DNA of 36,296 nt from Octopus sinensis (lineage: Eukaryota): NCBI RefSeq assembly GCF_006345805.1, contig NW_021826253.1:1-36296 (forward strand), written 5' to 3'. The position numbers were made by a program, and so were the translations under genes. How positions within the stretch are numbered: the stretch's first letter is position 1; each line of letters begins with the position of its first letter. Below the pieces are notes generated by a model, which was not told the DNA's origin, did not search any database, and saw only the letters and a list, made by a program, of their open reading frames with translations. This document shows positions 4,612-22,417 of this stretch, piece after piece.

Positions 4612-4791
4612 ATGGCAACACCATATCGATTACCCCCCAATTACATGAGACATCAAGGCAATTCTGGCAGACACTTTGTTGGACGACATTATGAGAGGGA
4701 AGAACTGAAGATCTTGATCAAGGATGAAGATACTCAAATAATACAAGTTTATGGACTGCCTTATGTTGGCAAAACAAGTCTTGTGAAAACT
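4612..4791 (+). CDS. Copy 1 exon 1: FVGR motif and Walker A (GLPYVGKT, 4753-4776)
   Basis: MATPYRLPP...[40 protein letters not shown]; donor ACT|GTAAG at 4792; in-frame TAA upstream at 4600-4602. Confidence 0.85.

Positions 4792-22417: not shown

Follow-up and report, generated by a model that had tools for sequence, protein, structure and literature searches.

LOC115227430, a gene of Octopus sinensis lying on the scaffold analysed here (the whole of which, 36,296 nucleotides, is referred to below as the window), is best explained as one that is intact, codes for protein and belongs to a young octopod subfamily of STAND proteins, duplicated in tandem, in which an NB-ARC-like NTPase module is predicted to be followed by a TPR solenoid and a short tail. 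Taken as a whole, that is with a sensor-type role for the protein included, this explanation has in our estimation a little less than an even chance of being right.

Ten exons on the forward strand between 4612 and 22417 splice to a coding sequence of 2577 nt, which encodes 858 aa without an internal stop. All introns are of the GT..AG type, the phases are consistent across the ten-exon model and the TAA stop is found at 22415-22417 (Table 1). Eight of the coding pieces are visible as stop-to-stop frames on the forward strand, the boundaries of which were read for GT and AG, while the two small exons at 8257-8413 and 13168-13277 were placed by alignment to paralogous octopod proteins of 856-858 aa. 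An exact-sequence look-up found the spliced protein to be letter-for-letter identical to RefSeq XP_029654124.1, an independent prediction. The gene is already annotated, though unnamed: LOC115227430 is "uncharacterized" in RefSeq and bears no further name. Three claims of the original prediction, which had been made from the DNA letters, are thereby borne out, namely the 858-aa splice model itself, the cephalopod origin of the DNA (close matches are all octopod) and the view that this is not a named gene. RefSeq also lists an isoform X2 (766 aa), which corresponds to residues 93-858, starts at Met93 and is without the Walker A/P-loop. As for the arrangement of the exons, those starting at 12606, 14794, 15325 and 16166 (exons 4, 6, 7 and 8) all have phase 1, a codon being split after its first base. 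The starts of exons 4, 6 and 7 coincide with, or slightly precede, the Gly with which a TPR-like unit opens, and each of these exons codes for about one helical unit. This pattern suggests that the repeat grew by exon duplication.

Table 1. Coordinates of coding exons, repeats and transposon remnants in the window
Feature	Position	Strand	Remarks
Exon 1	4612-4791	+	Residues 1-60; start codon, disordered N-terminus, strand β1, Walker A GLPYVGKTS; donor GTAAGA
Exon 2	6301-7326	+	Residues 61-402; Walker B CIFDD, degenerate sensor-1 ILSGGK, GxP CGLPG, winged helix, VQE at the MHD position, first solenoid helices
Exon 3	8257-8413	+	Residues 403-455, last codon split; helical hairpin; exact match to the partial protein P0013 (LOC115226970)
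Exon 4	12606-12753	+	TPR-like unit; Pfam TPR_1 and TPR_2 matches at residues 457-471
Exon 5	13168-13277	+	Helical unit; found via paralogous proteins
Exon 6	14794-14907	+	TPR-like unit
Exon 7	15325-15468	+	TPR-like unit
Exon 8	16166-16277	+	TPR-like unit
Exon 9	18813-19077	+	TPR units; best Pfam TPR_12 stretch (residues 654-722)
Exon 10	22097-22417	+	Residues 752-858 and stop; helical tail with P-x2-3-C-x-x-C (P814, C817, C820)
Tandem paralogue, exon 1	29606-29785	+	5' part of second copy; frame intact
Tandem paralogue, exon 2	31095-32120	+	Frame intact
Tandem paralogue, exon 3	34691-34847	+	Frame intact; contig ends at 36296
LTR-retrotransposon pol fragments	2610-4015	-	Close by, 5' of the gene
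Integrase H2C2 zinc-binding domain	3000-3341	-	E 1e-12
RT-associated RNase H	3815-4015	-	E 2e-6, just below cut-off
PIF1-like helicase fragment	9259-10017	-	Intron 3; open frame of 252 aa; Pfam PIF1, E 9e-32
(GGTA)n microsatellite, first copy	5125-5562		Intron 1; ~110 units
(GGTA)n microsatellite, second copy	30121-30321		Intron 1; ~50 units
ACC-rich minisatellite	18066-18765		Intron 8; 88-bp unit x ~6.4, nested in ~216 copies of a 3-bp period
(TA)n tract	24216-24899		Intergenic; 684 bp
19-bp tandem repeat	27850-28226		Intergenic; ~20 copies

In the predicted structure, residues 1-340 make up a STAND NTPase module in which a nucleotide-binding domain (NBD), a helical domain and a winged helix follow one another in this order. 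The motifs expected of an NB-ARC protein are also in their proper places, as the original prediction had read them. Walker A (G48-LPYV-G53-K54-T55, motif 48-56), Walker B (CIFDD at 111-115, i.e. I112-F113-D114-D115 at the end of strand β3) and the GxP or 'GLPL'-like motif in ARC1 (C201-G202-L203-P204-G205) are kept and invariant in the octopod copies aligned, the winged-helix motif at residues 273-284 is kept too, and they are followed by VQE at the MHD position. Two switch residues are nevertheless missing from this series. The sensor-1 Arg (the RNBS-B 'TTR' after strand β4) has been lost, octopod proteins reading ILILSGGKP where corals have LLLTTRES, and so has the MHD His after the winged-helix hairpin (FQVQEL, with V321-Q322-E323, against coral FTIHSL), which is also absent in the distant relatives P0148 and Solemya. 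Both residues are replaced throughout the molluscan branch. In Apaf-1 and plant NLRs, the sensor-1 Arg reads the γ-phosphate, while the MHD His contacts the β-phosphate of ADP and helps to hold the closed state. Since the Walker A Lys and the Walker B Asp-Asp pair are kept, nucleotide binding has likely been preserved, whereas the canonical lock and sensor apparently have not, and the loss of both residues could have turned the module into a non-switching pseudo-NTPase.

Sequence models give this module no name. The Pfam NB-ARC model (PF00931) reaches 18.4 bits against a cut-off of 23.5 and covers the P-loop region only (residues 33-102), and the Argonauta homologues score 15.1 and 15.5 bits with it. 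The Pfam matches at the N-terminus (ATPase_2, AAA_16, AAA_14, nSTAND6 and NPHP3_N besides NB-ARC) are all sub-threshold and restricted to the P-loop, a profile search of PDB sequences with the N-terminal 400 residues returned generic AAA+ P-loop matches only (RFC, RecA, Clp and Lon), and neither PADLOC nor NCBIfam contained a specific match for the module. The Pfam NACHT model (PF05729) did not match the octopus protein at E<=0.1. With only sub-threshold or generic P-loop matches to go by, the NTPase clade is thus not nameable from sequence models alone. According to both Pfam and the structure model, there is no N-terminal effector domain, only ~20 disordered residues preceding the NBD.

The structure was predicted for the paralogue P0001 (858 aa, 94% identical), using a 48-row alignment of octopod and coral sequences. 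The full-length AF2 model (pLDDT 74, pTM 0.57) begins with a five-stranded P-loop core (43-48, 74-80, 108-114, 141-146 and 160-165). Residues 190-242 then form a helical domain and residues 247-333 a winged helix, the wing hairpin of which spans 310-321, and these are followed by ~22 helices between residues 394 and 800, among which ~9 TPR-like hairpins can be counted between 394 and 771. The pLDDT of the solenoid helices is mostly in the 80s and 90s, and the tail is of low confidence. The TPR nature of the solenoid is also apparent in Pfam, where TPR_12 (PF13424) is significant (48.4 bits, cut-off 30.1) over two stretches; the C-terminal half matches only TPR families there and is all-helical in the model, leaving no LRR. 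When the full model was compared with the PDB by Foldseek, the top match was 6mfv (E 1.1e-9, 796 aligned columns), entitled "STAND protein with a tetratricopeptide repeat sensor domain", ahead of a series of TPR proteins (APPBP2, LGN, KLC, OGT and CTPR) and then of Apaf-1, ZAR1, NRC3 and ORC. A separate model of residues 1-340 had a pLDDT of 61, lower than that of the same region in the full-length model. Its top 50 Foldseek matches (E 2.4e-10 to 4e-7) consist exclusively of ORC/Cdc6 and NB-ARC proteins, the latter being NRC2, WRR4A, ZAR1, the NRC1 NB-ARC domain, a wheat resistosome, NRC3, NRC4, CED-4, Apaf-1 and RPP1, with modest TM-scores of 0.33-0.46 (normalised to query length). No NACHT protein is found in the top 50 of either model. 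This composition of the N-terminal list argues for a module that is NB-ARC-like at the level of the fold. The three-subdomain fold (NBD, ARC1 helical domain and ARC2 winged helix) is thus predicted to be present, by models of moderate to low confidence, and the predicted architecture of the whole protein, a P-loop NTPase with a winged helix and a repeat sensor, is that of the STAND class.

How the protein should be classified has shifted from the original prediction, which had seen an NLR-like NB-ARC-TPR receptor and had proposed to look for NB-ARC, winged helix and TPR solenoid with HMMER, HHpred, Foldseek or AlphaFold. All three are recovered by fold and the TPR part also by TPR_12, whereas Pfam NB-ARC stays below its cut-off, so that the NB-ARC assignment holds for a fold that is nearest NB-ARC proteins and is weakened by the absent sensor-1 Arg and MHD His. 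TPR strings are present at the exons where they had been placed, although the count of about seven units was slightly low in view of the ~9 hairpins. The NLR label, taken in its strict sense, has to be abandoned, there being no NACHT match, no LRR and no effector domain: a metazoan NLR in that sense combines NACHT with LRR (PMC3879445), and the octopus protein is not an NLR by this definition.

Relatives of the protein are distributed in a manner that is at once narrow and very wide. The protein search found close relatives (47-85% identity) only in O. sinensis, O. vulgaris, O. bimaculoides and Argonauta hians, and a single non-octopod match, P0017 (E 1e-5; 1e-9 by BLAST). This protein leads to a large scleractinian coral family (Porites, Oculina, Stylophora and Orbicella); it aligns with the octopus protein over the whole NTPase module, the octopus and coral proteins have the motif FPGRFGI(D/E)EA in common, and residues 3-330 of P0017 match the bacterial NB-ARC-type FxSxx_TPR model of NCBIfam (E 1e-32). 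When 1.84 billion representative proteins were searched with a profile, which leans towards corals because P0017 was included in it, 9857 matched at E<=1e-3, 58 of them at E<=1e-30. Among the matches that are nearer to the octopus protein than to the coral one, and colinear over 690-860 residues, are proteins from Argonauta hians, two bivalves (Solemya velum and Pecten maximus) and a hemichordate (Glandiceps talaboti); further out there is a TPR protein from Chloroflexota. The superfamily is thus old and patchy, and the octopod subfamily a lineage-specific expansion within it. The original prediction had called the family lineage-specific, which is right for the octopod tandem expansion and too narrow for a wider family that reaches bivalves, a hemichordate and corals. 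The case that it had named against itself, a clear single-copy housekeeping orthologue conserved across animals, is ruled out by the tandem octopod cluster and by relatives in other phyla that are distant and patchy.

Several known systems resemble the protein in part. With the NB-ARC/AP-ATPase proteins Apaf-1, CED-4, ZAR1 and NRC2 it shares the order of NBD, helical domain and winged helix, Walker A, a Walker B of the hhhhDD type, GxP, the hydrophobic-FP motif in the winged helix and the best structural matches of its N-terminal module. It differs from them by its sub-threshold Pfam score, by SGGK in place of 'TTR' and VQE in place of the MHD His, by the lack of a CARD, CC or TIR effector and by C-terminal repeats that are TPR rather than WD40 or LRR. 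NB-ARC/NACHT-TPR proteins have been described as a class in scleractinian corals, and most coral NB-ARC proteins are equipped with TPRs, their expansion proceeding by tandem duplication (PMC4083563, PMC10236652). The P0017 family from corals, the only non-molluscan relatives retrieved by direct sequence search, is similar in its colinear NTPase module, FPGRFGI(D/E)EA motif, TPR_12-type C-terminal repeats and tandem expansion. However, identity is only 18-23%, and in the corals both the His ('IHS') and 'TTR' are retained, the canonical TPR_12/TPR_10 arrays are longer and there are in some cases N-terminal coiled-coil extensions. Archaeal and bacterial STAND-TPR proteins of the PH0952 type (6mfv) are alike in whole architecture, with a P-loop STAND module and then a TPR sensor, whereas similarity to the bacterial NB-ARC-TPR regulators of the FxSxx_TPR/AfsR kind is confined, at the level of sequence, to the TPR part (E 1e-5). 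In contrast to these prokaryotic proteins, the octopus one is encoded by an intron-rich eukaryotic gene and has no DNA-binding or other output domain. Finally, what is shared with metazoan NLRs (NOD1/2, NLRP and NLRC4) is the STAND class and the general logic of a repeat sensor that controls an oligomerising NTPase, but there is no NACHT match, LRR or death-fold effector. Proteins of the NB-ARC/TPR STAND kind are already known from corals and other invertebrates, just as the gene itself was already in RefSeq.

A six-frame search of the O. sinensis assembly (2.72 Gb in 13,516 contigs, the window being the whole scaffold G000:C2724) revealed how the octopod copies are arranged. Two copies of exon 2 are found in the window, others on C476 and C766 and about ten on the chromosome-scale contig G000:C23. 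The second copy in the window starts ~25 kb downstream of the first and its remainder is cut off by the end of the scaffold; the window is thus a piece of a head-to-tail tandem array. The DNA at 29010-32281 is 94% identical to that at 4016-7488, introns and upstream sequence included. On C476 (20,349 bp) and C766 (20,340 bp), where the partial gene is called LOC115226970 in RefSeq, exons 1-3 give scores identical to those of the window's own copy, so that these contigs are probably haplotigs or a redundant assembly of the same array, and positions 1330-1650 of C476 contain the last exon of an upstream paralogue. The cluster on C23 covers ~0.45 Mb, with matches (C-terminal exons included) spanning 3.886-4.340 Mb in both orientations. 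More divergent homologues of the NTPase exon occur elsewhere, at G000:C26:14047490-14048338 (reverse strand) and on G000:C12701, one being an open frame of 362 aa with 30% identity and the other matching at 29-48% over three pieces; they suggest that one or more additional subfamilies exist.

The state of the C23 copies was assessed by mapping the window exons onto 200 kb of the cluster (3,886,000-4,080,000, loci L013-L032, with 8752 N), which contains five full-length copies and a 5'-truncated one. Copy E is intact, its translation matching P0001 (858 aa, no stops). Copy C is intact through exon 9, while its exon 10 is duplicated and shows indels when read at fixed boundaries. Copies A, B and D have frameshifts or stops in exon 2 or lack exons altogether, which brings the broken copies to three of the five full-length ones, although single-base frameshifts in these paralogues may in part be long-read assembly errors. 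Exons 4-8 of copy A are duplicated internally. The sixth copy begins with exon 4 at 4076376 and runs past the stretch that was read. Copies have thus been both gained and lost within the cluster. The window gene, E and C (as well as the window's second copy for the NTPase module) were compared pairwise by the Nei-Gojobori method. With dS among the copies at 0.04-0.12, dN/dS was 0.35-0.46 for the NTPase module (residues 1-402), 0.64-0.65 for the TPR region (403-751) and 0.89 for the tail (752-858). The family is thus young and under purifying selection, with a constraint that weakens towards the C-terminus. An alignment of seven octopod proteins, from Octopus spp. and Argonauta, has ~360 invariant positions. 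As the pairwise comparisons gave no regional dN/dS above 1, the idea of positive selection was given up; diversifying selection is not supported and relaxed constraint fits equally well.

The main alternative sees in the protein a TPR scaffold or adaptor with no part in immunity, in which the NTPase is degenerate, inert or limited to nucleotide binding and the duplications are neutral drift in copy number. Nephrocystin-3, with its P-loop/TPR arrangement, and TPR cargo adaptors are the comparison for this reading, which we regard as rather unlikely. The TPR part does resemble the adaptors LGN, KLC and APPBP2 by Foldseek, and there are weak Pfam matches to NPHP3_N in the octopod proteins and to NPHP3_N and TPR_NPHP3 in the coral relative, but those to NPHP3_N are below the cut-off of the model. 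Similarly, while the loss of the sensor-1 Arg and MHD His across the molluscan branch and an annotated isoform devoid of a P-loop speak for this reading, every octopod copy aligned has kept Walker A and Walker B unchanged. The missing effector domain and a dN/dS below 1 everywhere would suit an adaptor too. However, a protein of such a housekeeping type would be expected to be conserved and single-copy, which is difficult to reconcile with a young cluster rich in pseudogenes and with ~50% divergence between Octopus and Argonauta.

A second alternative, which we consider very unlikely, takes the gene for a decaying or functionless representative of a family that is dying out, comparable to an expressed pseudogene whose frame has stayed intact by accident. 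The condition of the C23 cluster, with its frameshifts, stops and missing exons in three of five full-length copies, lends itself to such a view (with the reservation about assembly errors made above), as do dN/dS values of 0.65-0.89 in the C-terminal parts and introns filled with transposon debris and microsatellites. It is nevertheless contradicted by a 2577-nt frame that is intact over ten exons with canonical splice sites throughout, by the much lower dN/dS of the NTPase module and by the ~360 residues invariant in seven octopod proteins.

A third reading, in which a mobile element (a Helitron or an LTR element, say) carries the gene as a passenger or gave rise to it, would explain the copy number but is scarcely credible. 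A PIF1-like helicase fragment does lie in intron 3 (probably Helitron debris), and fragments of integrase and RNase H are found a short way upstream, but these are truncated, on the opposite strand and, apart from its first bases, outside the block duplicated in the window, while the copies all belong to one cluster rather than being dispersed, share a conserved exon-intron structure and have homologues in other phyla that are ordinary host genes. An artefact of open reading frames was considered as well and rejected.

For an intact member of a young octopod STAND subfamily, a function as a cytosolic STAND-type switch or scaffold can be envisaged, in which surveillance would be the most economical guess, one that architecture and family dynamics make possible and to which we give a chance just short of even. 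The reason for this guess is that the family resembles the expanded NB-ARC/TPR repertoires of invertebrates in its tandem duplication and lineage-specific expansion (PMC4083563, PMC10236652). The TPR solenoid would bind a ligand or partner and, when unbound, would hold the NTPase module in check; after binding, the NBD-winged helix module would drive self-association. By this usual STAND logic, a role in innate immunity or in the surveillance of stress is plausible. The switch itself would be non-canonical, nucleotide being bound without the sensor-1 Arg and without the MHD His that locks ADP. Since there is no death-fold or TIR effector, output would have to depend on partners or on the conserved tail. 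This tail has no match in Pfam families. Its motif P-x2-3-C-x-x-C (window 22282-22302) is invariant in octopods and is found again at an equivalent position in a protein of the bivalve Solemya velum, a second Argonauta protein and the transcript P0148; it could form half of a zinc site, or serve in redox chemistry or in interactions.

A clustered NB-ARC-like/TPR family with fast turnover is a reasonable candidate for an intracellular receptor repertoire in cephalopods, for which full-text literature searches returned no description of intracellular STAND/NLR-type receptors or of such a family. A bolder version, decidedly unlikely in our view, is that octopods, and perhaps molluscs more widely, possess private NB-ARC-like/TPR receptors with a rewired switch, no canonical ADP lock and an output via the P-x2-3-C-x-x-C tail. 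If true, this would add a form of STAND immune signalling with a new mechanism, and would do so in a clade whose intracellular pattern receptors are essentially undescribed. The loss of the two switch residues makes the family a natural test of how much rewiring the STAND mechanism tolerates.

The window also contains remnants that were recognised by eye. A short frame at 7374-7688 (forward strand) resembles a Pif1 C-terminus, with no Pfam match, and frames at 454-774 (reverse), 19517-19738 (reverse) and 32764-33126 (forward) look like C-termini of Tc1/mariner-type transposases, the last being the only one of the three that Pfam DDE_3 matches, weakly (E 0.0015). The minisatellite of intron 8 has a GC content of 51% and a GC skew of -0.70 and stops ~50 bp short of the exon-9 acceptor; in frame with the ORF of exon 9, it translates into long runs of His, Thr and Pro.
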